The notes under the pieces are model-generated. The model saw only the letters and a program-made list of their open reading frames with translations, did not search any database and was not told where the DNA came from. This document shows, piece after piece, positions 3,001 to 43,350 of a stretch of 64,000 bases of DNA. Each line of letters begins with the position of its first letter. Position 1 is the first letter of the stretch. This DNA is from Asterias rubens (lineage: Eukaryota), in NCBI RefSeq assembly GCF_902459465.1, contig NC_047079.1, positions 7,502,001 to 7,566,000 of the forward strand, read 5' to 3'. The translations under genes and the position numbers were made by a program.

Positions 3001-3109
3001 TCCGGTGATCATGCATGCGGTTCAATTTTTTTATTTCTACGTATTTCAAAATTTGACTTATTTCACGTCCTTTTTTTGAAAGAGGATGAACGAATTCAAG
3101 ATATATGAA

Positions 3110-3320
3110 AGCGAAGCTTTCAATGATGCCCAGGTATGAAGTGTGACGTCAGATGCTATATGCAGCACCAAGAATAATTCTAAGTGTACGCTTCTGAACC
3201 CGCTCTCAAGAACATCAACTTGTTTTGCAGTCAAACCAGCGTTCCATACTGGAACCATGGAGACTGGAACGGCGTACTCTAACAAGGACCTCACATGCCC
3301 CTTATAAATCTGTCAAAAGG
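3110..3320 (-). mobile_element. Decayed non-LTR retrotransposon (CR1/L2-like) ORF2 C-terminal fragment
   Basis: Minus-strand translation RSLLEYAVPV..WNAGLTAKQVDVLE resembles the post-RT 'LEYAxPVW...LERVQKRA' segment of CR1/L2-group LINEs and is frameshifted afterwards. Confidence 0.65.
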
Positions 3321-5259
3321 TCAGCTGTGGAGAGATTAAACACCAATTTGTTGTCTTCTTCTTTTTATGTATTTTTTTATATTTTTTTATAGTTGATTAT
3401 TGGATTAAGAAGGGCCCAAATAGGCACTTGTGCCCATTTTTTAATAAATAGTGTAACATAATAGCAGAGAAGGTAATTAAAAGTTGTTAGATAATGTTCT
3501 TATGGTGACCCTACGTTTTAGGTTATTGACATTCAAATAGCCATCAGTTCTAAAAAATTAAAAAAAAAATCCCTAGGCTTTTGAAGTATTAGGGTATTAA
3601 TGGAAAAAATTTGCCAATCCCGAAAAATGAACATTAGTCAGCCACCAACAAACACTATTGGTACAAATTGCCCATGGTGTTATGGCCTTGAAAATCACTT
3701 TCACGCTGTAAACGGTCTTTGAACTCAGGTGAAGGCAGTGGCCATGGATGCTCTGGTTGACCGCCAAAACCAAGGAGGAAATAAACATACAACAACCGAG
3801 AGCTATTCTTCGTCACATGATGATGTCATGAGACCAGGGTCACCTGATAATAAACCGATTGTATCGCGCGGTGCCGTGTTTGCTCGCGTAAATTTGGAAC
3901 TTGCGCGACAAAGCTAGAGCGCAGTATTTTGCTGACTTGCTTTCAGTAAAACCAATTTCTAGGTTGGTTCTTAATTAATTCATGTGACAATGCGCTAGAA
4001 AATGGACTGGAAAACAAATTCAAGTGAAATTTAGCCATCAGTAGCTTGCGCGCGCAAATGAAATATACGTATGCACTGCCAATTATCAACCTCGTTTGCA
4101 TGGTTAGTAAATCGTCGAACACATAGCGCTAGGAATAGCTTGGCAAATTAAAAACACCCTTGGAATCGAGCTTGTTTTAAGGTCACGTAAGGGTCACCAG
4201 TCAGTTGTCTCTAAAACTGAGCTAAGGGTCCCGTGCGTGATTTGACGATGACACAGGCGGTGTGTGGTGTCTGACAAAATTCATCCCTGAATTATTTGAC
4301 GTTCGTTGAGTTGATATGACAATGTAAAGAATTGATTTCTGTGACTGTTTCCGATAATAATGAGTAGCATAAACGAAGGTGAAAGCAAAGGAGGAAACAG
4401 TAAAAGGTAAGGGTTAATTTATGAATGCCAGCCTTCGGCCCCCTACTCGATCGACGTACCGTCGTACGGTCTTGCAGATTGGCCTTGGCCCTTGCCCTTG
4501 GTTTTACCTGTATCGTTATTCTTTTGGGTTTACAACTTTTTAAATGATATGAAATTGTTAAGCTGGCATGTTGTGTGTTGACTTTAGTTTGGGAGTTCAT
4601 GGTAGTTAAAACACGAATATTTACACCACACTTTTCCACTATTAACACACTTTGTCATTACTTAATTTTAAAAAAAACTACACTACAGACTGCAAACAAA
4701 AGTGTGGACTGAGTCAGCTTTCTTCAAGTTCAAAGTTTCATTCATTCAACAACACAGCCATTCGTGTAAATCAAGTTCGGAGCGATTTCATTTCTATTTC
4801 ATCATCATAATTATTTATTATTGAAAACAACACATGACGATTGATACAACTTGGACAAATATTAACCAGAATTAGAAAGAGCATCATTCTGAACATGAAT
4901 AAAAGTAATTAAACGCAGATTCAAACGACATGCAGCAGTCACTCCAGTTCAAGCTCTCTCGAAAGGTACACACAGGGCCAGGCCACTTTTTTCGCCCTAA
5001 ATTTAGCTTTGGTCACTTGAATAATTTGATAACTTCAATTTCCATTTTTATAAGCTTTCATCCCAGCATATGGAACCACAGTCAAGTAGGATTCACTTGG
5101 GATTAAGATTCTCGTTCATCTTTATCTGTTCATTGATTCTCTGACCAGAGGTACGTTCATTCCAACTACCTTCAACCTACATTCTCAAACAGCCGTAACA
5201 ATGTTCCTCTCCCCTTTTTCCATTTTAGGCTGACGCTGTGGTTAAAAAAAGAAACAGAC

Positions 5260-8200
5260 ATGCAACGAGCCGGCATGAATGAAAAATCACCGCTCCTAAG
5301 GTATCGATTGGACAGCCAAGATCACAGTGTCGAGGTACCGGACAATGATGGCAACCATGAAGTTCATGGCGCTGGATCTACCCGTCATCTAACGACATTC
5401 TTCGGCGTTTTTGTGCCATGTGTGCTGTCTATGTTCAGCGTAATCTTGTTTTTGAGAGTCGGTAAGTGGCATGTCTTAGTATTTTTTAGGAATAAAACAT
5501 CTGTCCCCTTATAAATGTTGGAGTATTAGTTTGGTAGTCAAAACATTTACAATTCTGATAGCAACAAGAATTAAGAAATATTACCAGTTGGTTTTTATTT
5601 TTTAGAGTGAACATTTTTTATTTTTTGTTTTTTATTTTTTTAAATTTCATTTACCCTTCACTATGTGTGATAAACACCTGTAGCTTACTCAGTCCGTCTT
5701 TGGCTGAAAAAAAAAATCCCAATACCTGGATGGGGTTCCATGGTTTGCCCTTTCAGTGACTAGCCAGCAGGACAAGGGCCTAACTTCATGGCTCTTCTTA
5801 TACTGTAAGCAAAGAAATCAGGGAATTCCACGCTTACATGAAAGCATATTTCACAGGTTAGCAGTGAATGTTTGATTTGACTTGCGTTCTCCATGTTCTT
5901 CGCTGACATAGCTAGCGCAGAAATTTGGCAACTGCCCTGTAAGCAAAGATTGGTGATCGTAAGCACAGAGTTTGACAGTAAGCAAAGCCATGAAATTGGG
6001 CGCAGCTGGCTTGTCATTTTGCTACTCCATCAGCTTTATAGTTCATAATTCCTATTAGCGAGACTTTAAAATAACAGCGAGACTTCAAGACTTCATAATA
6101 GCGAGACTTCAAAATTCTTATGTCTGTCTCTCTCAGGTTACGCTATCGGTGAGAGCGGCTTGTTACAGTCTCTGGGTATGTTTGCTTTGGGTTATTTCAT
6201 CGTCTTGCTCACTGTTCTCTCCATCTGTGCCATTTCCACCAATGGAGCCATCGAAGGAGGAGGAGCATACTGTATCCTTTAAGGCACTGAAGATTTCTCA
6301 GAATTTGTCTTGAATTCTCCTTAACAAGTCTTTATATGTTCTTGAGGAAGTAAAGCACTTCACCAAAGGGAGAAAGAAACAACACATAATTATTATCTGT
6401 GTCCAAACCTGTAGTTTTGTATTTCAGTGCACATACAGTGTAGTTTCCCAAAGGGATGTTTCTGTGAATTGCAACTCAGGTTCACTACACTACACTGTGT
6501 AGTGTAGAAAAAATGAGTTCCGACCCTTTGGGAAACTTTCAATAGTTTGCAAGAGGGAATTTCCTGTCATTGGAGTCGAGAACAGGGACCCAATTTTGTA
6601 GTGCTATTTTGGGCTAAGAATTCACATGCACCGATTCTGATTGGTATCCTGCTAATTGTTGCTAAGCACAGAACTTGTAAACAAAGTTGTCTGCAAGCAG
6701 CTGTATGTAATTGGGCCCAGATTGTGAACAATGACGCCTGTATCACATGATGATGTACACAATACCATGATCCTGATCGACCTTTGACCCAATCACCACT
6801 ACTGGTACAAAGATTAGAGATCAGAGTTTGTTCTCTGAGCTAGCCGCTACCAAAGTCTGTCCTACTTGAGATAATTTTTATCGATTGGTCATAAATTATC
6901 ATGTAAACAATTGTTCAACAGGTACCAGTCTGAAAATTTGGTATTTAGTTGTTAAGGATTAAGACAGAATGCAAGACCCTTTATGCAACCTGTATTTAAA
7001 AGACCTGTTTGATTCAGACATTGTAGGCCTATTGTTTGTTTTCAAGTGATTATTGTTGTCCATGAACTCAAAATTCACATTGTTATCTGGGGTCATAGGC
7101 TTATGTTGATAAAAACCTTAAAAAACAAATAAAATGAATATGACACACAATGGCTTCCAATCAAACCCACATTGACCCACTTTCTAACCCACATTGACCC
7201 ACTTTCTAACCTTTCATGCATTGCCAAACATTTCTTGCTGAAGTAAGATAAAAAAGGGAACAATTCAATTTAATGTAAAAATCTTCCTTGAAACTGTTTC
7301 CTTGTATTTTGAACAGCCATAGAAATATATCAGGGGAAAAACAATTTTTATGGAATTAATTTTACGTTCCAATTTATTGTAAATCCTGAAATAAGATACA
7401 TTTAAAAAAGGTCAACTGTGTTTTTGTTTTTTTAACACAGATTCTTTTCTTCAGTTATTGCCAGTATCTAAACCCGTCCCTAAAAATAAAAGTTCAGATG
7501 CATATTTTTTTGGTGGAAATTATTTCTTTGTAACGAAAATTGACCTTAATTTGAGTTCATCAGTTATGATCAGCAGAGCTTTAGGACCAGAATTCGGAGG
7601 AAGTATTGGAGTCATGTTCTTCATCGCTAACGTATTCTCCTCAGCGCTTTATTGCATCGGCTTTGTAGAGGCTATTATGGATAACTTTGGAATTGGAGGT
7701 AAGATTTTAGGTCAGAAGTTTCTGCAAAGCTAACTGGAAAAATAGTAATTATTAATTATAAATTGGGATGATGTCCTGATTTCTTAAGGATGTGGCTACC
7801 TGATTGTCAGACTGCATCAAGCTTGGATCTTAATTCAAGTGTCATGGCAACCCACAATCTGTTTGATTAGAATACCAGTCAACTAGAATCTGGTGCTCTA
7901 GACTGGTCATCATGGAGACTTCGAGTTTCAGATTATTTTGTCTGGTACCCTGTATTTGCTTCTAAACCAAAGACTTTGATTTACGTTGATTTTGTTTTCA
8001 CAGGAGCACTTCTCGTTGACAGACAGAGCGGACTTCCTATCGACCTTTGGTGGCCATTTTTGTACTCCTCTATCGTCCTCTTCTTCTGTCTCAGCGTCTG
8101 CCTCATCGGAGCCGGGATGTTTGCCCGTACCTCCTTCCTCATCTTCTTGGTTGTCATGGCAACACTCGTAACGGTGATTGTGAGTTTCTTCACCAAGCCA

Positions 8201-11200
8201 GCAGGGGATATGCCGATCCCGCACAACAATCCAATTCATAATGTGACGTCTAACGCTTCGTATACCGGCTTCAAATGGACTACGCTACAGAGCAATCTGT
8301 ACGGTGAGTATGCCAATACTTTAAGGATTTAAATGCGACACCACTAGTCTCGGTTTATAGATCTTATGGTACATGACGTCGTCAGAGTCGAGAGTAATGT
8401 ATTGAGAGAGTTGCGACAAAGAGGGACCAGTTTTCTTCGATGATGTGGTTGCTGGAGGCCATTTTGGAACCAGATGCTGCACAACCACATTGGCAGACTA
8501 GTATGGCACCTTGTATACGCCAATGTGTTTTTTGGACACAAAGTGACTTCTAATTGCAAGTTCCCATAACTCTCTCAATCTGGCTTTGGATATTGTTTGT
8601 GGAGGGTGCCAACTCAGATTACCATCTCATATAAACATTTCACTTTCTCTTTCAATTTCCGCAGAGGACAATATTCCTGACTATACGACAGGCAAGGATG
8701 TGAATTTCCTTGTAGTGTTCGCCGTGTTGTTCAATGGATGCACAGGAATCATGGCTGGAGCCAATATGTCGGGTCAGTAAAGCCGATTGTGCCCCTGATA
8801 GTTTTGAAAAAGTTAGGGTTAAGTTTTTTTTGTCCTGATTTTACAGATGCTTCTGTCATGTCTGTAGATGTTTGACCAGCTGGGAGGCCAATTTCATGAA
8901 GCCTGTAAACACAAATACTTGCTAAGCACAGAATAGTACTGCTGAGCAGAAACTCTTTACCAGCCAAAATTACATTAAGTTTGCATTGTTGTGGCTTATT
9001 TTTTGCTTAGCCCTTATGAAATTGGGCCCAGGTCTTACCCCTGGAGTGCGTTGTGGTGTTGCACGTCCATTCAGTCCAGGGTATTGGACTCAAGTTCTGA
9101 TCGCTTATTTATCAGAAAATGAGTTCATGTTTCTCAAATATATTAGGGTTGTTGTCTGTTCTTGTATGCTGCAGTTGACTGTCAGAGATGTAGTTAGTAC
9201 CTTGTTTGAGTGGATTTAGCTAAAATGGCTGGACGGTTTTTGCCATTTTTTCAACAAGTTGACACTCAGCTGGAACTTTAACTAGTGATTTTAATACATT
9301 ATTATCATAATTATGTTGACAAAAAAAATCAGCATTTTGTTGACAAAAAATCTGTTGAAATGTTTGTAGGTGAGTTGAAGAACCCAGGTAGATCGATTCC
9401 CAGGGGCACTCTAGGAGCTTGTCTCTTTACTGGATTGATTTACGCCTTAGTAGCGTTCCTCGTTAGCGCAACCTGCTCAAGGTAAGACTAAGATTCGCCC
9501 ATCTCTAGATTTTTCTTGTTGTTCTTGTTGTTTTGCTTTTTATGACAGTAGTTCATTCTGATTGAAATGTTTAAGGTATCGTAAAGAATTGGTAAGGATA
9601 AACAACATAATTGCTTAATTTCAATCTGAAAGCCTACTTAGTTTGAAGTTCCTACCACAACAAAATAATAATAATAATTTTCCTATACATATAAAAAAAG
9701 TCATATATTTGAGAAAACTAGGTGAAAACCCGACTAAAAAAAACGCAACAGCTGATTTTGGTTGTTACAACCGAAACTAAGTTTCCTTGCTTAAAATTCT
9801 GCATGGTGTTTCACTATTTTTTGGAAAGAAAGTTTGTTGGCTAAAGTTGTCATCTAAATTCCCCTTCTCAACTCTTGTTCATATTCAGAGAACTTCTGCA
9901 GAATTCTTACGGCTTTCTGCAGCAGATTAATATCTTTCCACCGGGTGTGGTTGTCGGAATCCTAGTAGTCTCTTTATCAGCCGCTCTTACAACTCTCATT
10001 GGAGCATCTCGAGTCCTCCAAGCCATCGCTAAGGATGCTGTATTCGGTAAGTTCCTTAAAGACACTGGACACTATTAGTAATTGTCAAAGACCAGTCTTC
10101 TCACTTGGTGTATCTCAAATTATGCATTTTGGGATATTTGTTGACAGCTGCTCAGCAAGAGGATTTGGTGTTAATAACAACTTCCTTTGAGTTGACTAAA
10201 ACATAATATTTACAGGTTCCATATGGTGGAACAACTGTGTAAAAGTTGGGGGTCGGCCTATCGGTATCTTTCCTTGCCTTCCACCTCTAGGACCCTGGTT
10301 CGAATCTTACCGGGGGCACTATGTGGATTGAGTTTTCAATCTCTACCTGACTGCCTGGGTTTCCCCCTGGATTAGTCCTCCCACATCTGAAACAAACATC
10401 TAAAACTGAAAAAAAAAAATTGCTGTGATAAATTTTGTTAATGATTACTGATTAGTATTTGACAGTATGATCAATTAAAAAAAAAATTACCAACTATTTT
10501 CTTTTCTGACGTTCTCGTTTTTCAAGGTGTTATTCTTCTGCCAGTACACAAAGGGATCACAAAGGATGGTAATCCCATTGTTGCAGTTCTTGTCTCTTGG
10601 TTTCTTGTCCAGGTATATACAACCAATGCAAATATTGTTTTTAACAAATTAATAGTGTGAACTTATTTTTATATAACTTGTATATTTGGTATTGCCGTAA
10701 CACCATGTATGTATCTACTTGCTTGGTAATTATGATTATAAACTCATCTGAAGATTACTTAAATAGTTACAAATATTTTGTGCTAATTTATCTTGCCAAA
10801 ACAGCTTGTTCTATTGATGGGATCATTGAACACCATCGCTCCCTTGGTCACCATTTTCTTCTTGCTGTCATACACGGCCACCAACTTGGCTTGTATGGCC
10901 ATGCATGTTGCATCAGCCCCGAACTTTAGGTAAAGTGGTTTGAGAAAAAATTGTATCTGATATTTTGACAAGTAAAAGTATAGTTATCTCTACTTAATTA
11001 GGTTTAGCATTAAGGGTTTATATACCCTTTATAGATAAAGTTTTTGGTCGTGGCATGAATCCCTACCCACTGTCAGGGCTCATTGTGAGGGAAGATGAAT
11101 GTAGAGCGTAAACTAGGTCATAAACAGGCTTTAAACTACTGTGAATGAAGATGTATGTACATCCAAACCTAGATCCTAAACCAGAGCAAACCTAGACCCT

Positions 11201-14200
11201 AAACCAGTTCTGAAAACAAACCCAACACTAGAACCATCGTTCCAAAAAGTTCCTTGATGTTGACTGTTTTGCTTCTTCTTGCCCATGCCACCTTCTCCAG
11301 GCCGTCCTTCACGTACTTCTCATGGCACACATCGCTTCTTGGGATCGTGTGTTGTCTGGTCATGATGTTCCTCATCAATCCACTCTGGGCATCCATCAGC
11401 ATCGTTGTCTTCATCCTCCTCTTTATCATCATCTCGTTCCGCATCAGTGAATCGGACTGGGGTTACATCACACAGGCGCTCATCTTTCATCAAGTGAGTG
11501 GATTTTTATATTAATTTTAGTTTGACCCTTACACCGATGAGTGTTAGCAGTGTATTGACCCCTTGTACGCACATCACACGCTCACCATTTTGAATAACCC
11601 ACGGTGACATTGACCAGGTTATTCTGATGATGACGTGTGGTGAATTGGGTCAATACTCGGTACTTTCATCAGTCGCTCTGTGAACAAAATCACAGGCATA
11701 TTACTTGTGTGGGATTGGAACCCACGACCTTTGCAGTTGTTCATGTCCAGTGTTCATGTTCAACTGTAGTGTCTTACCAACTAGTCCACTGAGATTGCCC
11801 GGTAGGTAGAGGCAGTCATCTGTGTCTTGAAATCAAATCGGTTTCTTAATCTGGAGGTCATTGGTTCTAGTCCTGTTGCAGTCAATTTTTCTTTGTTCAA
11901 ACCCAAACTATCTGAAATCAATCAAGTCATAAACAAAGGACCATGGTAAACAACTCAAATTTGTTGGGTTAAAATATTTCCTTTTTCTTGTCGGCAGGTT
12001 CGTAAATATTTACTACGTCTTGACGTCAGAAAAGATCACGTCAAGTTCTGGCGCCCTCAGATGCTCCTACTAGTTGCGAATCCTCGTTCGTGCTGTGAAC
12101 TCATCAGATTCGTCAACGACATGAAGAAGAGTGGATTGTATATTCTGGGTCACGTCAAACGAGGTCAGAAAAAGAATTAATTTATGAAATATTTTGCCAT
12201 TTTGTGAAGCCTAATTAACTTTAAAAATATAAATTGTTATGAAGTTAAATGTTTTTGTTATTTAAGAGTGCGTTGTCCATGTTTCATGCTATGATTCAAT
12301 GTATCTGGATATTTCAATATTGTTTGTTTTTACCCAATACTGTGGTGTGTATTAAGCCCTGTATACTCTTCTTACTTTTCTGAGCTCTGTGAAAAATCCA
12401 AAGGCATATCACTGGGTTGGGATTCAAACCCACGACCATTTTATTTCTGACTAACAAAACCACCAAGCTAGCCCAGTAGCTAGAGGCAGTTCAAATCCTA
12501 TGTGTTGACTGCGGGTTCTGCAATGATCTAATAGGTGTTAGTTTTGCATCAGGGATATAAGCTGTTATACAATTTTGATTTAAGTTACAAAAGCTGTTAA
12601 GAAATTGTTTACAAATTGTTTGAACATTATTGTGATTTTTATTGTTGATACCATTTTAAACATTTTTTGTAAGCTACTTGAAAAGTGTTCAGAAACTATT
12701 TAGAAACTGTTTTGAAACTATTTTGAAACTTTTTAAAGACTATTCAAAAACTTTGTTGAAACTAATTTGAAATTCGTCAAAAACGGTTTATAAACATTTC
12801 CAAAACTATTTTGAAACTGTTCAGAAACTAGGTTGAACACTAAAGAATCCCTTGCCACATACTTTAGCTAGTTTTAAAGCACAGCACTCAAATTGGAATT
12901 TTTAATAGGTGGGCCATGTGGTGCTTTTCCTGGCTGGTCCAGAATTTTAACCTTTTTCTTTTTTCTATATTGGCTTGTTGTAAAGATTTTGCGCTGTTGT
13001 CGTCTGTCCGTAGTTTTTATTTAAATTTGGCTGTTTTTCTATTTTAAATAATGCTCTTAATCATTTAGTATTTATAAATATATATTTTATATTTTAGAAT
13101 ACAATTTTAAAATTTTGATTTGTTTGTAGTTGCTGGGCACCTCTGAAAAACAGTGTTTCACTGAGAGGTTATATAAGAGGGTATATAAGAAATAAATAAA
13201 TAAACTATTTAGAATCTATATAGGATTTGAGGTATTGCATGGTGAGGTATCAATATATATTTGGTTTGCGGTAACACCATGTGTGTATCTACTTGCCATG
13301 TAGAGTTTGTTCTTAGAGAACTGTCTTTATTCTACTACTGCGGAGTAGATTTACCGGATGTTCGGGAGACTTTTCAGTTCTGAAAAGAACTGTCCTGCTT
13401 TTTAGAAGCTATTCAATATATATTCATAACCTGTACTTGTGAACTATTAACAATAACTCATCCTTACAACTTTTCTTCAAGGTGTTTTGGATGAGGGTTA
13501 CTCCGATCCTGTCCAGAAGGAATACCCAGCATGGATCGTCCTGGTAGAGAAACTTAAAGTGAAAGCATTTACTGAACTGACTCTCGCTCCAACGATTCGG
13601 GAAGGAGCTCAACATCTCATGAGGATTTCAGGACTTGGAGGTAAGGAGAAAGCTGAGTTTCTGTTAAGTAATAATTTTACGGAAAATTATTTTGAAAATA
13701 AAGGGAAATCTGATATTTTGTGGCGTGTCAAAAAGACAGAATAGTTTAACGCTTCCTCTAGTTAATAAATATTTGGTTTATTTTCTTGTAGGTATGAAAC
13801 CAAATACAATAATTCTAGGTTTCTACGACAGCTGCCCATCCAAAGATTCATTCGATAAATGCAAAGTGACGAATAACCATGGCAACATATACGGAACAGA
13901 AGATTCAGGCATTGAGGAAGAGAGAGGAGATCCGTTGAATGCCTTTGAGCCCGTCAGACAGTTCAATAGTCCAAACAGACTGTCCATCGAGGAATATGTT
14001 ATGATCATCAGCGACAGCATCCGATTAAGGAAGAACGTCTGCCTCATGCGTTACTTCAGTAAGTTTGACCGGGATGCCATCGCTGCTAGCAAGACCCCGG
14101 CGTTCATCAATGTCTGGCCCATCAACTTCTTCAAGCCGGAGACCAGCGGGTACCTGGATACTGCATGTATCTTCCTATTACAGCTTGCCTGCGTCCTCCA

Positions 14201-14645
14201 TATGGTCCGTGTCTGGAAGAAGCACACCTTACTACGAGTGTTCCTGTGCAATGGTGCCGATGATGACAGCTCCATCAGCAAGCACAGACGAGAGAAAATG
14301 GAGAAGTTTCTAAATGAGTTGCGCATCAAGGCCACGATCATCATGGTCAGCAACAGCAACATCCAGCCGTTTGCCGTTATGAAGGATGACATGGGTGCTA
14401 GTAGTGACCACGGCCATGCCCAGTTGGTTTACTCCCAGGTCTCCGATACGTACATTCAAGAAGTCAACACTATGATCAAGAATTACTCAAAGAACACCGC
14501 TGTGAACTTCTGTTACTTACCGCTACCTCCAACAGATTCCACTCAGCAAGCTGATTACATGCGACATCTAGATGCGCTGACCTTTGACCTGCCCCCAACC
14601 GTTCTTGTTCACGGTATACAAGAAGTAACATGTACAGCACTCTAG
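5260..14645 (+). CDS. SLC12A9: Solute carrier family 12 member 9 (cation-chloride cotransporter family), 13 coding exons, 910 aa
   Basis: Exons 5260-5461, 6137-6271, 7564-7698, 8004-8303, 8665-8772, 9370-9481, 9889-10046, 10527-10612, 10805-10929, 11301-11493, 11998-12163, 13482-13640, 13792-14645. All introns are GT-AG with matching phases; total 2733 nt. Motifs [84 protein letters not shown] and C-terminal [17 protein letters not shown] are characteristic of SLC12A9 (human 914 aa). Confidence 0.96.
5776..6003. mobile_element. MITE family with GGGCCCAATTTCAT-type terminal inverted repeats
   Basis: gggcctaacttcatg...catgaaattgggcgc. Related copies at 8886-9029, 30139-30382 and 34251-34491. 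Confidence 0.75.
6272..7563 (+). other. U12-type (minor spliceosome) GT-AG intron in SLC12A9
   Basis: 5' site GTATCCTTT at 6272 matches the U12 consensus RTATCCTTT. Branch-like CCTTAAT at 7544-7550 lies 11 nt before the terminal AG, with no polypyrimidine tract. Splicing restores GGAY-F-MISR. Confidence 0.88.
12692..12834. repeat. Degenerate 11-bp tandem repeat (GAAACTATTTT-like, 13 units)
   Basis: gaaactattta gaaactgtttt gaaactatttt gaaacttttta ... gaaactgttca gaaactaggtt, with an exact 11-nt period. Confidence 0.8.
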
Positions 14646-16058
14646 AAGACGTCGTGTCAAAGTTCATACAGATTCCTTTTATGCATCTAATGCTTTTATA
14701 TTTGTAATTATTTTGTACTGTGCCTTTACATTTTATTTATGATAATGATATTAATTAAAGCATTTTTTTCAAGGACATGTCTTTTTTTTTCTAGTTTGGC
14801 TACTCAGAAAAGGCTTTCACCATTAGTTGAAAAATAGAAAAACCAAAATATTTTGAGGGAAAAAGAGTGACTTGTTTTGGTGAAAACTTGAATTGAAATT
14901 ACTCAATTAGTGACAGAACAAAAAAGATCTTGTTGTAAATTGGAATGAGGACCAACCGTTTAATGACTATTTAAAGCCAATGGCCTTGAACTACGTCTTC
15001 ACTTCTTATCAGCCATTTGTTCCCTTTTGTAAAGAATGCATCTATGACAGGCCTGGGATTTTATCATTTAGAGGGCTAGGCCATTTTCTTAAAGGCAAAA
15101 TTTTTGTTTTGATAAACAAAATGGGGAACCATCGAACATTTTTGGTGTAAAGTTGTAGGATCCAAGATCAGGCACCTGCCTAAACTCAAGTAAAGTTTAT
15201 TTGCTCAACAAATAGATGGGCTTTCGATCTTTCATCAAGGGCTTTTGTTTTGCTAACTCACTTTTTGAACCCTATATTTAATTTAAATTATGATATTGTG
15301 AGAATTAAAAACTTCAAGCTGTGTTGCAACTAACATCACAAAATATATAAAATTGTTCAATCAAATTGTGTCAATTTTAAATTGCAATTGCAACTTTTTG
15401 TTTTAGTATAACTTAAAAGTTTTGTTACGTTTCCCTTAGGTTATTTTATAACAAGACTATACCATGAAAGTAACTTTTTAAACAAGAAAAAAAAAATATA
15501 GACAAAAATAGAAAACATGAACTCTTTAAATATTGTTAATAAGGAAAGAAAATTGCTGCATATTATGAGATTTATCATCCATGGTATGGTAGAAAAGAAT
15601 AGCATTTGTAATAGCATTTTTTTTCTGCATATTATATTTTTTTGTAAATTTTGTTAAAACATAAGAAAACAAATTGAATTTAGAAAGGAGCATAAACTGT
15701 GGAGCAAATGTTAAACCTATTTTATGAACAACGTTTTGTGTTGGTATATATTTGAGATCAAAGAGCGAGTCACATTTTAAGGCAGTGTACAAACATTGCT
15801 CTGTAGAAATTTGTTGCCAGAGCCAAAATGTTCATACTGATGTGGTCGGAACCCTGTTTAAAAGCTGCAAATTCTCCCTGAATCTGCTATTTCCATGTTC
15901 TGATTATCAAATCTGAAAATCTATCTGATTATGGAAATCTTTTCACTATTTATGTTGAATGCAATTTAATTATCTCCCTGATATGAAAACAATCTTCCTG
16001 ATTGCAAGATAAAGGTGTTGGTAACTGTAGGTGTTGGTAACTGTAGCTATCTGTCTGA

Positions 16059-16420
16059 AGGCACTGGACACCTTTGGTACTTTGTCAAAAAGATTAGTAT
16101 TCTCACTTGGTGTATCCCAACATAGGCCCCTATGCATAAAATAACAAACCTGTGCAAATTTGGGCTCTATATTGGTCATCGAAATTGAAAGAAAATAATG
16201 AAAGAACAACACCTTGTTTCAGTAGGTGTACTCTCACATGTATGATAAAGGCTACAGGCCTGAAGTCTTTCTCAGATTCAAATACTTTAGTCCGAAATTA
16301 TCTCTCTAAAAAACTGTACGTTATTTACTTCATAGTGATTCATTTCTCACAATGTTTTACACTTACAACAGCTCTCCATTGCTCATTATTGTGAGTAACT
16401 ACCAAACGTGTCCAGTGCCT
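16059..16420. mobile_element. Non-autonomous DNA transposon (Kolobok-like), AGGCACTGGACAC TIR family
   Basis: aggcactggacac...gtgtccagtgcct. Same family as 61615-61969, with partial copies near 10065-10130 and 21240-21377. Confidence 0.75.
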
Positions 16421-19720: not shown

Positions 19721-22700
19721 TCAAATGCTTCTTTTCTGAGATCCTTGTCCTTTGTCAAATACGGGTGTCCTCCAGAACAGAAAGTGTGCTGGATTTGAAA
19801 AGGGAGGCAGAGAAAGTACAAATTAGGTAAAAAGGCCTTCGCTTTACTGAACAAAAACATAGAGCAATTGAACGATCGTGTAGGAAACTTTTAAAGTATA
19901 TTAAATTTGCATTGGGGATAAAAGATGTTTTACCCCTATGTCGACGTGTATCAAGCCCTGTATTTGGTGTTTTTCCCGAGTCCTTTGTCTGGTTAGACGG
20001 TTCTCTGGGTATAATAAAGAGGGTTCGATTTCCACCCGAGTTATGCCTGAGGATATTTTTCACGTGACTCTGGGAAAAGTTCTTATAGATACAGTGCTTT
20101 ACACAGATTTGGTAAAACAGAATTATAGGGTTAACTTGATTACTTTTACGGGTAATAATGTTATCTTTCGGAGGAGAGGTGTTTCTGAAAACAACTATTA
20201 GTGGTGAGATTCTCGACGTTTCAATCAGTATACGCTGTTGGTCTTAGTGTGAATGCTAGCTCATGTATTTTTTTTTAAACAATATTTTGTTTGTTTTTGT
20301 TTATGAAAAATGTTTATTCCAAAATTAAAAGCTATTTATTTTACTCTTCTAGACTTCTCCTAAGCATATTAATGAGCAGACAATTATTAATTATGGGTAT
20401 GCACAAGTTTGATTGTAAAGTTCTTTACTTTTTTTTTTAATCTCGATTGTTTAGTTTGTCCTTGAGAAAATTGACTCCCGTGAAAACAAAATATTTCTGA
20501 ATTTTACGGTAAAAATATTTGAAATATGGCTGGGGTTCATGTCCGGTTCCAATGACAATAAACAACTGAGAATATTTGTAGGCCCTGAACAGGATGCCAG
20601 TCCATCGCAGTTTACTCCCCAGCTCTCACCAATACCCATTTGTACTCCTGGGTGGAGAGAAGCAATTATGATAACATTCCTTGCTCAAGGACACAAGTGT
20701 CGCAACTAACCAGGCCCAGGATTCGAAGTCCATCAATCTAGACCGCTCAGCCACGACATTTAAAAAAGAACAGTTAGTGGTATAATCATTACCAGATGGT
20801 CCTTTAATAAAAATCATCTAGGCTAAACTGTATCTTTAAAACACTTTTTTTCACCGTAAATGCTGACGAGACGAAAGTACAGTCTATGTTGAAATAGACA
20901 CGACTCGACGCAAACCCAATACCCGCTCTTTTGATCACGTATCGATTTATCCATAGCCGCAAAGACGGCTTGTCTGGGAGACTACACACCAACCCACCCA
21001 CGTCAACACGAAACCGATCCCCTACTTCAGACTTTTGAAAATTCCAAATGATCCGATTACATCCCCCAAAATATTTATTTCACCGTCTGTTAAATATTCT
21101 TAATAATTCTTGAATAATTGAATACTTGAATCACTGGGAAAAGAACTTCAAAAGAGGTAAATTCTCACTCAACTAATATTAAAGACTTCAGCTGAAGCCT
21201 TTTGTTATGCATCCGAAAGCATACCAAGTAAGGGTGTTTTTATTTCATTATTCTTTTGCAAATTCGATGACAAATTGAGCCAAATGTTCATAGACTTGTT
21301 ATTTTATATGCATATTGGAATACATCAAGTGAGAATACTGGTCTTTGACAATTGCCAAAGGTGTCCAGTTCCTTTAAAGCGCGCTTGATGATATCTTTTA
21401 TGTGGAATCTTAAGGAATAGTAACTTCACTTCTAGCTGAATCCCAGTTGCACTTCCCTAGACACGTCAAGGTGGATTTACGGAAACTTTTTTTAAACATT
21501 TTATTTGAGCAAACGTGTCAAGCGACTCTCATGTCAAGCCAAAGTAATAAATGTCGAGTATCATAGAAAAGTGTGTCAACCCCCAACTTATCATTACAGC
21601 ATTTGGATCAGGATAAACCTCAGAAGCCCCTGGAGTTATTGGAAGTAACAAAGAAATTGGGGTTGGACAAATAAAGAATGTCCAACAACCCTAAGGATCC
21701 GTAAATGTTGTTCTTTCTTCGATGGTGAATGAAACGAGCGCGGTTGAGCAGACGTTAAAATAAGGCGCGAAATATCCGTGGGGTATTTTGTAGTAAAAAC
21801 ATATCACGGGGTGAATTCTTTAGATCTGAAATTTCCTTTTTGCGAAAGAAGGCGGTTTTGTATGTTATTCGCAATTAAATTTCTGGGTATAGTGAGATTG
21901 TTTTTCTTATTCAAAGAGTTGTTGACGAAAGAAGCTGGTATATGGGGCCAACCAATCAAAAGTTGTGTTAGAAATATTATATTAGTATGGCGCATATTAA
22001 TTTGTATTTGTGATGGAAGTTTTGTTCTAATGTTCATAAGAATAGAAAAAGAACTAAGTAATGTTTGCGTTCATGTCTTATAAAGACTGGTTGTTTTCAA
22101 GAAATATTATATTCATATTGTTTTACTCAACTCCTTTATAGGGCTAAGACTTTGACGAACATCCAGTTATCAATCTCCAACAACATTCGACAGAGAGAAG
22201 TGATTTGACCATTCTGTAAGTTTACGTAAAGTGAAATATTTCCGGTAGTATTTTTGTTACCGCGATTCACATGGCAGCATGCGTGATGGGTGACAACCAT
22301 TTCTTTTTGTTTCCTTTCTTTATCGGTACTTTCCTTCCCAGCAATGTGACAAGTTTTTTCTTTATCAAAATTATATATAGGCCTTTACTTTTTATAGTAA
22401 ACAAATAATAATAATGCAGAACGAGAACAATATCATTACATCATTGGTTTTATGGAAGAGTTAATAGAGGTTAATTATTTTTGCATTGTAAAATTTACGC
22501 GTACCGTTACACTACAAAAACGGTATTCTCTCCATACGTTATAATCCCGTTTTAAATCATTTCGGAGATAATTACGGTTGTGCGTTATCTGGTTCGTAAC
22601 TATTAAAGTAAACGTTTGAATTTGGTTGTAAGGAATTGTGTTCTTGTGGCTTTAAGTGCGTTTTAAGTAAGTTTTTGTGTGTATTTTGTGCTTTTAGAAA

Positions 22701-25700
22701 CTCAAACCATAATGCATTTCGCTGAATATGGTTGTGTATAATGTGATAATAAAGCAAGCTATATAGGCCTACTATAATTTGCGTGCCAGATGAAATAATC
22801 ATATAATAGTTTTTGCATCAAAATTCAGATAATTTTATGGTGATCCAAATCAATAAACGAGAATAATTTCCCGCTCTCACTATTCAACGATGAGACCTTA
22901 ACACATGATGCGACATAGGAGCTTCATCGTGTAAATCAAAATCTAAACCCGGTGTGGCGGTTTCAGTCTTCCGCCGTGTTCAGTTTTCCGGGTGACGTAG
23001 TCGCTCATATCAGCACGTTGTTCGAACGGTTTTAGCTTTCCGGCGTGTTCAGTTTTCCGGGTGACTTGTCAGATACCTCCGCGAGTACCCTGGCGAGCAC
23101 TGTAGTTCTCTCAGCAGTGACCCCACATTGTTTATATTACGATTCTTTTCTGTGTAGTTACATAATCTCTTGCCCCATCTTTACATGTATTCATGGGTAC
23201 AACTTCAGGCAGGTCACACTCTGCTTGCGTAAAAAACAACTCATACGATCCACGCGTTTGCCGCTAGTTGTACTCGACTCGTGGACGCCGCCATGACAGC
23301 TACCGGAGGGTAACGGATGACTCAATACGGCACTAAAATTGAACTACTTTCGCTTGCTGTGCGCAGGCATCGCATGACGTAATGCTACCGTGTTTGGTCA
23401 TTCGGAAAACTGAACACAGCGGAAAGTTGAAACCGCCACACCGGGACACGTTAAGGACTGACGGATGGGTTACGTGATTGGCCAAAGGCACCCATGTGAC
23501 CTTTATCCTTCCACGTCTTTGAATCAAAACCAAATTGTCCATTTTTATTAAAGATGTCATCAGATCGTCACGATAGACACGAAGGAAGGAGTGTAGAAAT
23601 GTCTCCAAGCTATGCAGCTTCTTGTCAATCGTCAAAATGTCATAAACTAATTTCCACTATTGTGAAATAATATTATTATCCACATTAGAGGAGTCGTTGT
23701 GAACGTGTATACGTGTGTTGGCCACAGGAAGAAAATTAACACAAGTATACCTGAATAGGGTTATCAGCCAAAATACAACGTATACACCATTTGCTATGGT
23801 TTCCTGCTTATTTTTTGCTAAGCAGAAACATTTTACCACTAATATCTGTTTAAGCAGCTCAACGAAATTTGTCTCTGTGTTTAACCTGCATGCATATTTT
23901 AAAGTTTAATTTAAACTAATTTATATACCATATGTATAATTCTGTAAACTAAAAGTTTCTGCGAAGCAAAAGTCACCAATAAGGTCACCCAAGAGAATCC
24001 GTCGGTGAAATGCATCTACGTAATCTCTCTGCGATTCCCATTTAACGTACATTATCTTGATTCAAAGAGCGTAAGAATAAACTGTAGTCCAGCAACCTAA
24101 TGCACTTTAGCTTGATTCAAAACAGTATGTTTTTGCCTGCGCTCTCATGAGAAATGTCATCAGCATTGCCAATAACTAACAGAATAAAGGGAAAAAATCC
24201 AGCAATCATACAAACAAAACTATTTGCTAACAAGACTTTATCGGGAGATTTAAAATGAAAGAAGCCGAAACCGGAAATGACGATTTTCATTTTCCATTTT
24301 ACCATTACATTTTGGTAAAAAACCGAAAAACTAAAACAGTTTAAGTATTTGCTCTTCGTATTAAATCGATCTTACTACGGTTTTTGTTGTTCATTTTTCG
24401 AGATATCCTATTTCCAGCACTGCCTGTAAATATTTTAAAGCATTTTCTCAAAAACTTTCTCTCGAATCTTCCTTTCTACTGACGCAAGACCCACTTTCCA
24501 TTAGACTTAATTCAGCCGCTTAATCTTACTGCCGGTAGGGTTTCCCATTACCCTGTACGCACATCAGCCTTCAGATGAATTAGCTGTAACCGTAGTAGAG
24601 ACTAATAACGGTAAAAGCCCTAGTAACGTACGTACAGGCGCATTTGTTTTAATTATCATCATATTGAAAGAATTAGGTTTTAACCTATATTATGGAAAGG
24701 AAGTTGGTGTTAGATTCATATAAGACTTAGGCTATGCATGTTTGAACAAATTAAGTAGGGTTCGGTGAGACCATGTAATCAATCTATTTTGTGATTAGTG
24801 GTGGCTCTGAGAAGAGCTGGTTCCTTTATTAATTTGAGTTACCTATACGTACATTGTTGTTAGTAAGCTGCTCTTGTAAATTCTACTCGACTAGTCTCCT
24901 CACCACAAATATTACTCTTTCTTATAATCCAGAAACGTTCAAGTTTATTACTTGAATGTTATGACCCGAGGAAATACATGAAAGGGAAATTAAATAAATG
25001 ATTCAACTTTCAGTAATTGAAAGGAAATGATTGCGGCGTTTCTTGGGAGAAAAGAGCGGGTCTTTTTGTTTTATCTCGTTCGTCAAAGTATTTATTTTAT
25101 ATTTTATTAATCGTGATTTCATTTCATGATTCAGTTTTTTTTATGATTTAATTTCTTTTTAAAGAAACCGGGGTGGATATCACAAAGAGTTAGGACTAGT
25201 CTTATCTCGAGTTAGGACCAGTTACTCGTCCTAATTAGGACTATCCATGCAATTTGTATATCTCTTAGGACTAGTCTTAGGACTAGTCCTAACTATGTGA
25301 AACCGACCCCAGTACACTTATCGAAAAGAGAAGGGGTTCGCCCCGGTATTCCTGGTTTGATCGGAACTTGGCAGCATACTGCGCCACAGCACCTTGTAAA
25401 CCATTCATGTGGTGATATATAGCATAGACCTCATAATTCAAACGTATAGTCCCACATCCTTGAATGAAAGAACTGTACGTTAAAGCACCTTGAGCGACAC
25501 TGAACGGTTTTTGTTTGTAATGAAACTTTCTAAAAACAGATATTTTGGAGGTACCTTTCATGTCGATGTTTGATATAGGCCTAATGCAAACGATGACTAT
25601 TATGAGCAACTCAATACACACGCCATACGGCATAAATTCAGCATTAGTTACTAAACCTCATCAATATTTAAAAAGGGCATGGTTAATCTTACATTTTCTT

Positions 25701-28088
25701 TTTGAAACTCGTTGTACGTCATCTTCATTAGGCGTGTCCATGTCTTCTCTTAACAAGACCAGGGCATCCAGTAGCAGGTCTACCGTCCTTCTTTGCCATA
25801 GCCCGGGGGATGTGGCTGCTGGTCTTGCAACCATGTCGTACGGGAGGTTCTCTGAGTTGTAGACAAAAAAAAGAGGAAAACAAATCATCATATTTTCTCA
25901 GAATTTCTTTTTATTTGCAACTTTCTGAATAATTATTGGTTAAATTAAAAAATGCAAACATCGTGGCAAAAAAGCCGAATTGTGGATGCATTACAAAGAT
26001 TTTTTTTAACAAATTAAGCAGAAGGATTGAATCGGTGTGTAGGCCTGTTTAAAACAAAATCTGTTGGAACTCTGATTATTCAGAAAGTGATGAAGAGATT
26101 TTTTTGTAGAAAATAAACAAAAATAACTTTCTGCTTTTCGTTAAAGAAAACAAAATTAAAACGCCAAGTGCCTTTACCTCCGTGACTCGTTTTTGTCGGC
26201 ATTAAACTTTGATCGATAACTAATTTTTGTTAAAATAAACGAGGATTACAATTGCCTGTTCATTTTAAAATGAAATCTTTAATATTGGATAAAAAAAAAA
26301 AAAAAAAATAACTGCCCTTTTTTAAGTACCTCTAAACAATTTGACATTTTCTTTTAAGGTTTTATATTCATTTCACGTTTTTGAGCTAATGGAACTATGC
26401 AGTATTCATTGTAGGTTATATCTGTTGTCGAAAGTCAGAAGAAAAATGCACTGTTTGCACGAAATAAAAATACATTTTTACATCTTTGAGAAGATATATT
26501 CTCGTCTTAGGGTCTGCTGATATAAATAATTTAAAAACACACAAATCAAAATTATCTTAGAGGTAAATATGGCTATAGGGTAGTTCAGTAGTAGATTACG
26601 TTTATCCGGAGGGTGTTGGTTCAAATCCACCATAGTCACTTTTCTTTGTTCAAACCAAAATTAACTGCGACATAATGACTGTTTTGTTTTTGGTTTGTTG
26701 TTTTCTTTGACCAAGTGAATCCTAAACAAAGTCACTGAGGTGAAGTTTTTCACCCAGCTGAACAGGCTAAACAAAGTTTCGCAGACGACTGAATGTTTTT
26801 CCTATTTGCGTTGATATGAGGATATGGAATCTATACACAAATTTAAATATTTGATAAGTAAATCAATCAGTTCTTCCTTAAAGGTTATTTTGTGGAGTCA
26901 GCTATGCGTATGGTTTTATGGTATGGGCGATACAGAATAATTAATGCTCCACTGAAACATGAACAAAGGGAATTTTAAGTCTCCTCTTTTTATTCTGTGA
27001 TCAAAAGATATCTTTAATGCACAAATGTTTCTCAGAAATTAAACAAAATTGTGGACAAATTTTAGGTAATTACTGAAACTCTAAAGGCTGACCAATTAGT
27101 TTAATTAGCGCGTAGAAAGACCACAACTCAGAGTATACAATCTTTTCAGGGTTAATTGAAAAATGTTCAATATTGATTTGTACAATGCACATAGAGGACT
27201 TAGCCATCAGGCTCACTTAAAAACTTAAATTCAGAGAATCTCTCACTAGGTAAATTGCTCTTATTGACCAGTCATTCCCACTAAGCATTAGTCGGATGAA
27301 ATGAGAAACTAATGACCGTCTAATCCAAACAATGCCACTTGTTGACGGAGGTTGTTGTCCTAAGACGCTAATCTGAATGCAAATTAATGTTTTCAACCGT
27401 CCACTTTAAATACCGACCAAGATTGTACAACAACAAATCAAAAGGTTGGCTTTGTTTTACACACTGCGTTCACGGTGTGGAGAAAATTTCATGACAAATT
27501 TCTCCAAAATGAAAAGTTGAGCGCTGCCACTCGTAATTTAATCAAATCTTATAAGATGATTATGAATATTGGAAATAAGTTCATCTATTGTTTCGAGTAC
27601 CTACTAACAAAATAACAACTTTTGAAATGAATTTGACGGCGATCAGAGCACACTGATCGGTACGTCGAGTTTCTCACATCATCTTTTTAGAATCCTACTG
27701 CCGCTCCGTTTTGAACCGACTACAGTTTACAATAAATCCGTCAAGTAAACCAAAAAAGGACAAAAACGCGACTTGTCTTGTTTCTAGTAAAAATAAATCT
27801 TTGGCAAGTGAGGTCAAGCAGAAATCCCTTCACACAATATTTAAAAATCACATCCATTTGGTGAAACTGATTATTTGAACAAAAGCGCACCTCAAATTCA
27901 ATCAAATTATTGTCAAAAAAAAAGATTAAGGATTGTGTAAAAAGAAAAGGAGTAAGTGACTAAGATGCTTTCTTACCTTCTTCCGAATAAGGCGTTTCCA
28001 TTGTGCTAGCTGATCGTGTGAGTGTCGATATAACTACAGCAACCATTGCTAAAAGCACGCAAATTCTTGCGCTAGTCGTTCCCGCCAT
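19721..28088 (-). CDS. Putative secreted neuropeptide precursor (112 aa), 3 coding exons, family unassigned
   Basis: Exons 28088-27977 (donor GTAAGA), 25851-25693 (acceptor ...tttgtctacaactcag, donor GTAAGA) and 19788-19721 (branch CTAAT plus ctttctctgcctcccttttcaaatccag). Both introns are phase 1; total 339 nt. Protein MAGTTSARICVLLAMVAVVISTLTRSASTMETPYSEEENLPYDMVARPAATSPGLWQRRTVDLLLDALVLLREDMDTPNEDDVQRVSKRKSHFLFWRTPVFDKGQGSQKRSI has a hydrophobic signal peptide, acidic spacer and RR/KR sites. Exons 1-2 are well supported; exon 3 is my best acceptor candidate. Confidence 0.75.
20600..20757 (-). mobile_element. tRNA-headed SINE with a CORE/Meta-like central domain
   Basis: Minus strand reads gtcgtggctgagcggtctag...ggacttcgaatcctggg (A/B-box-like), then cttgtgtccttgagcaagg...tctctccacccaggagtacaaatgggta. 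Confidence 0.6.
22948..23445. mobile_element. ~500-bp element with ~49-bp terminal inverted repeats
   Basis: cccggtgtggcggtttcagtcttccgccgtgttcagttttccgggtgac versus gtcattcggaaaactgaacacagcggaaagttgaaaccgccacaccggg. An internal direct copy of part of the TIR lies at 23040-23065. Confidence 0.8.
25318..25505 (+). mobile_element. SINE body fragment with a Nin/Deu-domain-like core
   Basis: aaaagagaaggggttcgccccggt..cctgg...tgcgccacagcaccttgtaaacc resembles, from memory, the conserved central domain of DeuSINE/Nin-SINE families; not database-checked. Confidence 0.45.
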
Positions 28089-28208
28089 TTTCCGTAAAGT
28101 TGTCGTCTGCTCTTGGTATCTGCTATGGTTGATACACAAATCTGGTGGACATACGGCTTGGATCACTGTACTCCGAGTTAATGAACTTCTCTCTTTGGCT
28201 CAAAGTGT

Positions 28209-28634
28209 ATAATGACCGAAGCTACGGCCGAGGGAGCGGTTTTTATGCGGAGACTACGTTAGGCTCCTCCTCAACTCGCAACTACAAACAAAAAAACTGT
28301 GCGTGAGTTGTTTTTGCTGTCAGAAGAGTCCCCGGGCGGCGACTTCACGGACAAAAGATAACTAGCCTGTTCTTGGACGGAGGAATGAGTTCGTGTCGTA
28401 ATTGCTAAAGCAGCGTGTTTCGTTTTTTGCATCTGATGGAGTGGTTAACGTTTGGTGATCGCAGGCGACATTTTAATGAACATCTTGCAGGTTTTTTTTC
28501 CTTTTTTTTCTTCTTCATGCCCACGCTGCTGCAAAACGTCTAAGTTACGGATGATCTGATTGGCTGGAGGGGTTCCGGTGTCACACACACGGATGTACCT
28601 GTGGTTTCCATTGGTTCACAGCGGTATGACGTCA
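28209..28634 (-). promoter_or_regulatory. Candidate promoter of the neuropeptide-precursor gene
   Basis: On the minus strand: Inr-like TCATTAT (A at 28213), TATA-like CATAAAAA at 28247-28240, E-box CAGATG at 28435-28430, CCAAT at 28563-28559 and a perfect CRE TGACGTCA at 28627-28634. Confidence 0.5.
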
Positions 28635-36482: not shown

Positions 36483-36907
36483 TGTAGGCTGTAGACTTTG
36501 ACTGCCCTGTATAAACTGACTCTATGTAACGGAGGGGGCAACTTCGTTGTGGGCAACAAGTTGCTGAGGCCTGTGGGGCGAGAACTGGTATTCGATTTGA
36601 GCATCGGGCCCCTTGCACACAACGGCCCGCGCTGGATGTATGAGTTTGTGGGAATACCAGTCATCTCGCCCCCAGCAAACACGCCCACTGCAAAGTCGGT
36701 CCCCCCCCCCCCCCCCCCCCCCAGCAAAGTCGACCACGACCGGCGCGGTGTGGTGGTGGCCTCAAATCGAAGAAGGATCGACACTGACAGTTACTGACGG
36801 TCGTTGTCGTGTTTTGGGGGCACGTGTTATTATCAGGTGGTCTCTACCACGTGTGCACACGATTCACAACCATTGATTCCATCATACATGCCTAATCCGG
36901 CTTGGAA

Positions 36908-42394
<5,487 letters not shown>

Positions 42395-43350
42395 GTTTAT
42401 TATGCACTTATTAATGTTGTAAACAGGATCGTAATAATTGGGGCAAGTTTAAGGAAGTTTCCCTTGTCCTATTTGTAATGTAATGCACCATGTTATTATA
42501 AATTGCATAATCGATCCAAGGACTAAATCTTATCGGAATTTTCTTCGCTGAAATCAACGACCATCTCAATTTTGTAAAATCTTGGAACTTGCTTGGATCT
42601 TGACTTGCCTTGAATGGTTCTCTTAGTTTCTGTATGTGGGAATTGATATCACCATAGTGAGTGATATATCATTCAAAAAATGACAAAAAGGAGTTTTGTT
42701 ATAAAGTCATCAACCACAAGGGAACCTGACTGGTTGAATGTTAAATAATTTTGAGTTCAACTTGCCAATCGAATCAGGCCCTGAAAGTTCCTCTTTTTAA
42801 ACGTAAACAATTAAAAAAAAACACCAAAGTACAATATCGACTTTGATAAAATGGCACTTGATTTATAGCAATTCCAGAATGATATAAAATCCAGACATCT
42901 TATAATATACATATTATATACAGAAATGTTATTCTACAGAATACATCTAAACAATAAATATGGGACCAATATAAAATAAAAGATAATGTTGAACTTGTAA
43001 TGAATATGTGCACAGACATACTATTCTTCCTTTAGTCTGATTTTCTATTTTTGTTTGACCTTGGGAGAAAAAAAAAAGAGTATTTTATTTACAAGGTCTG
43101 AAAACTTGTCAAGTATGTAAAGTCTCATATCCCCCCCCATGACAAAACATCAGTCATGTTTGTACATCAATTTATTAAGAATTTTCTTTAAGAAAATAAG
43201 TCACCAATATTTATTGTTCTGTTACAGATAAACGTTTTTGTGGAGTCTAGTAATTCTCACCAATGAACTTAACCAGGGGCAACTTTAAAAAGGTTAATAA
43301 TAATCAATAAGTAACTTAAAGTCACTTTTTAAATCTTAGAGCGAGTCTTA

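Follow-up and report, generated by a model that had tools for sequence, protein, structure and literature searches.

The DNA analysed here, called the window throughout, is a 64,000-nucleotide stretch of chromosome 18 of the starfish Asterias rubens (NCBI RefSeq assembly GCF_902459465.1, contig NC_047079.1, positions 7,502,001 to 7,566,000 of the forward strand). The gene under study is LOC117302119, which is coded in three exons on the minus strand (Table 1). Its spliced coding sequence (CDS) yields a product of 112 residues that is letter-for-letter identical to RefSeq XP_033641809.1, "uncharacterized protein LOC117302119"; the gene is therefore annotated but unnamed and unstudied. A first-pass annotation of the stretch, made from the letters alone, had proposed that the short exon carrying the tetrapeptide FWRT encodes a cysteine-free, linear peptide of the somatostatin/cortistatin type at an ancestral locus close to PEX14. 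The exon at 19721-19788 is real, as established by the RefSeq match and by splice junctions found in RNA. LOC117302119 is an expressed gene, probably for a secreted prohormone that is an orphan conserved among starfish and whose FWRT likeness to somatostatin is convergent.

The reading frame opened by the ATG of exon 1 begins MAGTTSARICVLLAMVAVVISTLTRSAS and stops at the donor GAAG/GTAAGA in phase 1 (slashes mark splice sites). Exon 2, which is also matched by the genomic read-through open reading frames P0002 and P0003, has a polypyrimidine acceptor and the donor AAAT/GTAAGA. The frame that starts at the acceptor of exon 3 reads (S)HFLFWRTPVFDKGQGSQKRSI-stop. The Ser ahead of its first His is provided by a codon T/CA split by the phase-1 intron 2, with its first base at 25693, as the first-pass annotation had supposed. 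Contigs of four sequencing runs (RNA runs X1, X2 and X3 and DNA run X5) were aligned to window 22320-28319. The joint 25851->27977 (CT..AC on the plus strand, equivalent to GT..AG on the gene strand) is present in X1, X2 and X3, and was not seen in the contigs of X5. Contigs of X1 and X2 that end at 25693 run on into 30 nucleotides, ATACGGGTGTCCTCCAGAACAGAAAGTGTG, identical to window 19759-19788, which proves the junction between exons 2 and 3. The depth of sequence words in X1 and X2, two runs of a sister species, is ~3,000-5,200 in exons versus 11-18 in introns.

The transcript extends at least ~158 nucleotides past the stop codon in its 3' untranslated region (UTR), and an X3 contig of 427 nucleotides reaches 226 nucleotides past exon 2. 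On the opposite side, RNA contigs cover 27977-28319, from upstream of the ATG to at least 28319, so that either the 5' UTR is longer than 230 nucleotides or a start further upstream is used. A TATA-like element near 28245 lies within the RNA-covered stretch 28120-28319. The sister species has a 2-nucleotide insertion at 28152 in the 5' UTR. Intron 2 contains, at window 22920-23520 and 25120-25520, high-copy repeat fragments with many rearranged joints and loose ends and with word depths as high as 150,000-700,000 in the DNA run and 10,000-65,000 in the RNA runs. They are probably transcribed pieces of transposable elements.

The precursor features a hydrophobic N-terminal signal sequence, a proregion and one candidate peptide. 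Exon 2 codes for the block ENLPY..RP..W-Q-R-R-TVDxLLxALxLLRExM, and the carboxyl terminus has the organization KRK-SHFLFWRTPVFDKGQGSQ-KR-SI, with a single candidate peptide spanning residues 91-108 of 112. The AlphaFold2 (AF2) model, which is of low confidence, is mostly disordered (predicted local distance difference test, pLDDT, 50), with helices at residues 4-28, 53-74 and 80-88. Pfam gave no match to the precursor at E<=10. Its nearest neighbours in a protein-language-model search are mixed hormone precursors (DH31, NPFF, NMS/NMU, UTS2B, CCK and tachykinin), while the same type of search with the C-terminal 27 residues returned generic hormone classes only, with lead-level scores. The features generally expected of a neuropeptide precursor were all found: a signal peptide, conserved basic sites around a short conserved segment, and neural expression.

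Orthologues are found in two orders of starfish. The A. amurensis protein XP_071805524.1 differs from the A. rubens precursor by the sole substitution G54A. The two CDS have seven differences, six synonymous and one non-synonymous, giving a ratio of non-synonymous to synonymous substitution rates (dN/dS) of 0.05; exons 1 and 3 are identical while the surrounding DNA is 85-95% identical. Acanthaster planci, which belongs to another order, has an orthologue of 116 residues, LOC110982700 (P0005), with 58% identity and an E value of 1.7e-32. It was reached only by a profile that included a genomic fragment of exon 2. When exon 2 and the A. amurensis protein served as queries in word-based searches, only Asterias proteins and this single exon-2 fragment were retrieved, and phmmer against 1.84 billion protein representatives returned only orthologue fragments. 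The fragment of the same gene, 75% identical in exon 2, lies on Logan contig L001 (SRR26532981), positions 329-559, and its exon 2 ends in KK+G, as in Acanthaster and unlike Asterias. The Acanthaster gene also has three exons, with a 112-nucleotide first coding exon and both introns in phase 1; its second acceptor occupies the homologous site, with a 6-nucleotide indel after it. Within 10 kb of the Acanthaster locus there is neither a called gene nor a match to NSUN5 or SLC12.

The pattern of conservation is uneven. The Acanthaster precursor ends in ...VVKK-GNSHYLFWRTPVITSRSLSEESS-RKR-SN, and both orders retain the three basic sites (KRK/KK and KR/RKR for the two that flank the peptide). Nine of ten residues are identical between Asterias and Acanthaster in the segment SH[F/Y]LFWRTPV, which includes FWRT; the first way in which the first-pass annotation could have failed, loss of this motif in orthologues, is thus not what is seen. 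The 8-13 residues that follow this core cannot be aligned and have a dN/dS >1. The overall dN/dS between A. rubens and Acanthaster is 0.25, with the lowest dN in the helix block and in the core and an unconstrained tail, and the block WQRRTVDxLLxALxLLRExM is conserved as strongly as the C-terminal core. The precursor is under purifying selection. A near-invariant decapeptide behind the second basic site, followed by a drifting tail, is the pattern of a processed bioactive peptide.

Expression and protein data come from a radial nerve cord proteome obtained for crown-of-thorns starfish, where the Acanthaster orthologue is listed in Table S1 as the SignalP-positive entry oki.91.50, identified by mass spectrometry in a soluble extract of the radial nerve cord (PMC9971248). 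The main text of that study does not discuss this entry, and no sea-urchin BLAST match is reported for it (PMC9971248). Its transcript level in nerve is 13,111 transcripts per million (TPM) in the male and 5,404 in the female. It falls to 406 TPM in mouth, 115 in podia and 68 in spine, and further to 10 in egg, 5 in oocyte, 4.5 in sensory tentacle, 3 in gastrula and 0 in testis (PMC9971248). In female and male nerve, respectively, the calcitonin-type precursor has 11,981 and 30,316 TPM and the F-type SALMFamide precursor 545 and 663 (PMC9971248). The Acanthaster orthologue thus lies in the same range as the former and above the latter, which puts its transcript among those secretory ones that are most abundant in the nerve cord of starfish. 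Its expression is nerve-cord-specific and very high.

Table 1. Position of LOC117302119 features and of nearby genes. Coordinates of the genes around LOC117302119 and of ArSS2 are from Dataset S1 of PMC8851493, converted to window positions with an offset of 7,502,000.
Feature	Window position	Strand	Chromosome 18 position	Remarks
Exon 1, coding part, 112 nucleotides	27977..28088	-		ATG at 28088; signal peptide (about residues 1-29) and start of proregion
Intron 1, 2,125 nucleotides	25852..27976	-		GT..AG, phase 1; RNA joint skipping 2125
Exon 2, 159 nucleotides, residues 38-90	25693..25851	-		conserved block, acidic spacer, KRK site
R58-R59, exon 2	25787-25792	-		
KRK processing site, exon 2	25694-25702	-		predicted
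Intron 2, 5,904 nucleotides	19789..25692	-		GT..AG, phase 1; at first codon of predicted mature peptide
Exon 3, coding part	19721..19788	-		(S)HFLFWRTPVFDKGQGSQ-KR-SI-stop; acceptor tccag/CA at 19788
Conserved core SH[F/Y]LFWRTPV, residues 91-100	19760..19788	-		from Asterias/Acanthaster comparison
FWRT	19766-19777	-		
K109-R110	19730..19735	-		predicted C-terminal processing site; RKR in Acanthaster
SLC12A9-like	4,194-16,130	+	7,506,194-7,518,130	PMC8851493
NSUN5-like	36,785-42,539	+	7,538,785-7,544,539	rRNA methyltransferase type; PMC8851493
TMEM222-like	42,618-46,303	-	7,544,618-7,548,303	PMC8851493
TMEM222/RTE1-like exon	within 46121-46420	-		Pfam
PEX14-like	46,481-52,489	+	7,548,481-7,554,489	PMC8851493
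Pex14_N exon	48751-48867	+		Pfam
ArSS2			8,907,785-8,939,261	PMC8851493

The immediate neighbours of LOC117302119 are SLC12A9-like and NSUN5, not PEX14. The first-pass annotation had placed PEX14 about 19 kb from the ATG with TMEM222 in between; the distance (18.4 kb) and the intervening TMEM222 are correct, but NSUN5, which also lies between, had been missed. By the published coordinates TMEM222 and PEX14 are head-to-head and only ~180 bp apart. Two introns of PEX14 carry minisatellite arrays, at window 47769-48458 and 49252-49978, with units of 25/65/115 nucleotides (98-100% alike) and with ~6.3 copies of a 114-nucleotide unit (95% alike); both arrays are open in some frames and could pass for coding repeats. 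The ancestral locus had been proposed on the human arrangement, in which CORT lies beside DFFA and PEX14. Human PEX14 also lies beside CASZ1, and the human counterparts of SLC12A9 and NSUN5 are on chromosome 7.

The published coordinates match the locus record of LOC117302119, whose sequence is identical to that of the window, and place it 1.38 Mb from ArSS2, the recognised somatostatin orthologue of A. rubens (PMC8851493). Note that GenBank LR699109.1 (12.86 Mb) corresponds to chromosome 18, NC_047079.1, while the accession order would wrongly suggest chromosome 22. Amphioxus chromosome 14 carries SLC12A9, TMEM222, PEX14, CASZ1, an SS-like gene and LIG3 (PMC8851493), and A. rubens chromosome 18 shares ancestry with this somatostatin-bearing chromosome. 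LIG3 directly adjoins the somatostatin gene in both A. rubens, where this is ArSS2, and amphioxus; CASZ1 adjoins PEX14 in amphioxus and is 4.2 Mb away in A. rubens (PMC8851493). The distance from PEX14 to the somatostatin gene is 1.353 Mb in A. rubens (ArSS2) and 1.359 Mb in amphioxus (PMC8851493), which implies that PEX14 marks the linkage group rather than a cortistatin locus. The case for an ancestral locus near PEX14 is therefore weak. LOC117302119 does lie in the somatostatin linkage group, a property shared with every gene on chromosome 18. Assuming a genome of ~417 Mb, this chromosome makes up ~3% of it and the segment within 1.4 Mb of ArSS2 ~0.7%. The position is a mild coincidence that keeps the idea of a paralogue alive.

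LOC117302119 very probably codes a real neuropeptide-type precursor that is processed in the classical manner. After removal of the signal peptide, prohormone convertases would cleave at K88-R89-K90 and K109-R110 (in Acanthaster, at KK and RKR), and a carboxypeptidase would trim the basic residues. The predicted product is a linear, non-amidated peptide, SHFLFWRTPVFDKGQGSQ in Asterias (18 residues, monoisotopic mass 2136.05 Da) and GNSHYLFWRTPVITSRSLSEESS in Acanthaster (23 residues, 2652.29 Da). The conserved SH[F/Y]LFWRTPV would be its receptor-binding part, and the peptide may act as a neuropeptide or neurohormone, probably through a G-protein-coupled receptor. The helix W56-M75 around R58-R59 could be a part of the proregion devoted to sorting or chaperoning, or else a second product.

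Several observations weigh against this assignment. The published mass spectrometry was performed on tryptic digests of fractions from high-performance liquid chromatography (HPLC), and its table is silent on which peptides were detected (PMC9971248). The precursor has neither an amidation signal nor repeated peptide copies, features that secure many neuropeptide predictions; RTP is followed by VFDKGQGSQ-KR in Asterias and by VITSRSLSEESS-RKR in Acanthaster, with no Gly ahead of the basic site. One A. rubens RNA run holds the gene at a low depth of 6.5, and LOC117302119 is not in the nerve-cord precursor list of A. rubens published in 2016 (text and supplement, compared by length and cleavage sites). 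No orthologue was found beyond starfish by word, phmmer and profile searches, an absence that is weak evidence because short, fast-evolving precursors escape such searches. Finally, the whole proregion is unusually conserved, so that the uncleaved protein, or a different segment of it, might be what acts.

This last point leads to a non-classical reading in which a secreted protein of ~85 residues, or its helix 53-75, is the functional unit, acting as a granule, chaperone or binding protein of neurosecretory cells, and the basic sites are incidental. The conservation of the entire proregion, with WQRRTVDxLLxALxLLRExM constrained as strongly as the core, the helix predicted at this block and a very high transcript level resembling that of granule proteins are consistent with it, and detection after tryptic digestion does not prove processing. 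The reading is nevertheless unlikely: it leaves the retention of all three basic sites in both orders without a role, it does not account for a decapeptide that is near-invariant while its tail drifts, and outside the helices the AF2 model is disordered.

A second possibility is that LOC117302119 is a diverged, cysteine-less paralogue of the SSRP (somatostatin/urotensin II) genes, duplicated on the ancestral somatostatin chromosome and acting on ArSSR-type or related receptors through F-W-basic-T. It would be a third family member in echinoderms, of urotensin II/SSRP-like ancestry, that lost both Cys and kept the F-W-basic core 1.4 Mb from the somatostatin gene. Like ArSS2 (RAKNARCMADFWKGRGLVDC) and vertebrate somatostatin and cortistatin, its product has a core made of an aromatic residue, W and a basic residue in a single peptide near the carboxyl terminus of a small precursor, behind a basic site. 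It also shares with ArSS2 chromosome 18 and nerve-cord expression, and the linkage recalls that of somatostatin and urotensin II genes in vertebrates; ArSS2, unlike LOC117302119, has retained LIG3 as a neighbour, as in amphioxus. The protein-language-model neighbours of LOC117302119 include UTS2B. The core of urotensin II is CFWKYCV. Compared residue by residue, LFWRTPV aligns with it at least as well as with the somatostatin ring (FFWKT in somatostatin-14): F, W and V are identical and a basic residue replaces a basic residue. The loop Cys positions are occupied by Leu and Pro, no urotensin-type peptide or receptor is reported in echinoderms, and no statistical support was found for the likeness.

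The gene layout gives similarly divided indications. Protostome SSRP-like genes also have three exons: exon 1 carries the signal peptide, exon 2 ends with the processing site, and exon 3, which follows a phase-1 intron placed where the mature peptide begins, carries the W-basic motif; consomatin genes have the same phase-1 intron. In LOC117302119 the codons split by intron 2 come directly after KRK or KK (T/CA in Asterias, G/GA in Acanthaster). Protostome SSRP-like peptides further resemble its product in the Pro after the motif, and post-peptides following the mature peptide occur in protostome members too. This second-intron layout carries little weight because peptide genes commonly have it. 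All SSRP/ASTC genes examined have in common a proregion intron of phase 0 (PMC9048919), somatostatin having it as its single intron, while LOC117302119 has two phase-1 introns; the first one fails to match since 112 coding nucleotides precede it in Asterias and Acanthaster.

The peptide itself departs further from the family. A disulfide loop between two Cys is present in every described SSRP/ASTC member, and the motif is described in the cited papers only as W-K, preceded by an aromatic or aliphatic residue (PMC9048919). In A. rubens, A. amurensis and Acanthaster the only Cys of the precursor (112 or 116 residues) is C10, within the signal peptide, and the conserved F-W-R has Arg where the SSRP papers have an invariant Lys. 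The peptide lacks a ring and, unlike somatostatin, has a variable tail behind it, together with a dibasic site and two further residues. The first-pass annotation had seen Ser and Asp at the two Cys positions and asked whether Cys reappears in orthologues: none does in Acanthaster outside the signal peptide, its split codon is for Gly (the Ser comes from the insertion), and Asp102 is replaced by Thr. The first-pass annotation had cautioned that a four-residue motif can arise by chance. Translated in six frames, the window contains a single FW[KR]T where ~0.78 occurrences are expected from composition, so the bare motif is no rarer than chance and its context matters instead. Shuffling gave P values of 0.01-0.04 against somatostatin-14, before correction for many comparable families, and the peptide-level match is weak, with neuromedin U about as good. 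At the precursor level no similarity to the SSRP family was detected by Pfam (E<=10) or by phmmer against the same 1.84 billion representatives. ArSSR1-3 are reported as the sole receptors of somatostatin type in A. rubens.

Kinship with somatostatin or urotensin II is thus unproven, as the LFWRTPV peptide has no disulfide ring, and descent from this family has only a small chance of being correct. Of the earlier proposal of a linear SSRP member, the neuropeptide-type precursor and the somatostatin chromosome stand, while precursor similarity, intron phase and Cys positions do not support it. Convergence most likely accounts for the resemblance between FWRT and somatostatin.

Descent from a neuromedin U-type precursor is very improbable. 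The core H-F-L-F-(W)-R-(T)-P resembles YFLFRPRN-amide, with a shuffle P of 0.03 against neuromedin U-8 in Asterias; the NMS and NMU clusters account for 29 of the 100 nearest protein-language-model neighbours; and the FLF-R-P-like stretch lies near the carboxyl terminus of the precursor with a short tail after it. The alignment, however, is possible only with two insertions in a span of eight residues, Acanthaster scores less well (P 0.08), and Pfam gives no NMU match. The neuromedin U/pyrokinin type is defined by a PRX-amide C-terminus with a Gly-dibasic amidation signal. Neither is present in Asterias or Acanthaster, where the motif is at the N-terminal rather than the C-terminal end of the peptide and 8-13 further residues follow the conserved block. 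Spexin, the CRH-like "LLRE" helix, motilin and neuropeptide S were compared by eye and rejected, the matching residues being unconserved in Acanthaster or the layout being different. A chance open frame or annotation artefact without product, for which the only argument is a four-residue motif expected ~0.8 times in six frames of a 64-kb window, is ruled out to near certainty by spliced RNA in three runs, an orthologue of the same structure in another order, dN/dS values of 0.05-0.25 and detection of that orthologue by mass spectrometry.

An orphan prohormone conserved in starfish is the reading retained for LOC117302119. It resembles the unassigned echinoderm precursors of the Arnp/Spnp/ApNp series, which are small, nerve-cord-enriched, endowed with a signal peptide and dibasic sites, without relatives outside echinoderms and recognised by layout alone. 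It differs in length and cleavage-site positions from the Arnp entries of the 2016 A. rubens paper. Neither the peptide strings nor the gene identifiers were found in searchable paper texts, a search that did not extend to the Acanthaster neuropeptidome of Smith et al. 2017, and the only public trace of the gene is one unremarked row in a supplementary table (PMC9971248).

Among deuterostomes other than chordates, starfish are the main model in which neuropeptide evolution is studied, and the catalogue of their peptides is regarded as fairly complete. LOC117302119, with no name and no assigned family, is a ready candidate for a new signalling peptide. The product predicted from it, being short, linear, unmodified and easily synthesised, lends itself to trials on orphan receptors and starfish muscle preparations. 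If descent from the SSRP family were true, this ancient hormone family would gain its first naturally linear member, and deuterostomes other than chordates their first urotensin-like peptide. The disulfide ring would then no longer be indispensable in the somatostatin/urotensin family, and the duplication that separated somatostatin from urotensin would predate chordates, changing the date of their split. The gene may also be of practical interest where the biology of crown-of-thorns starfish is concerned.

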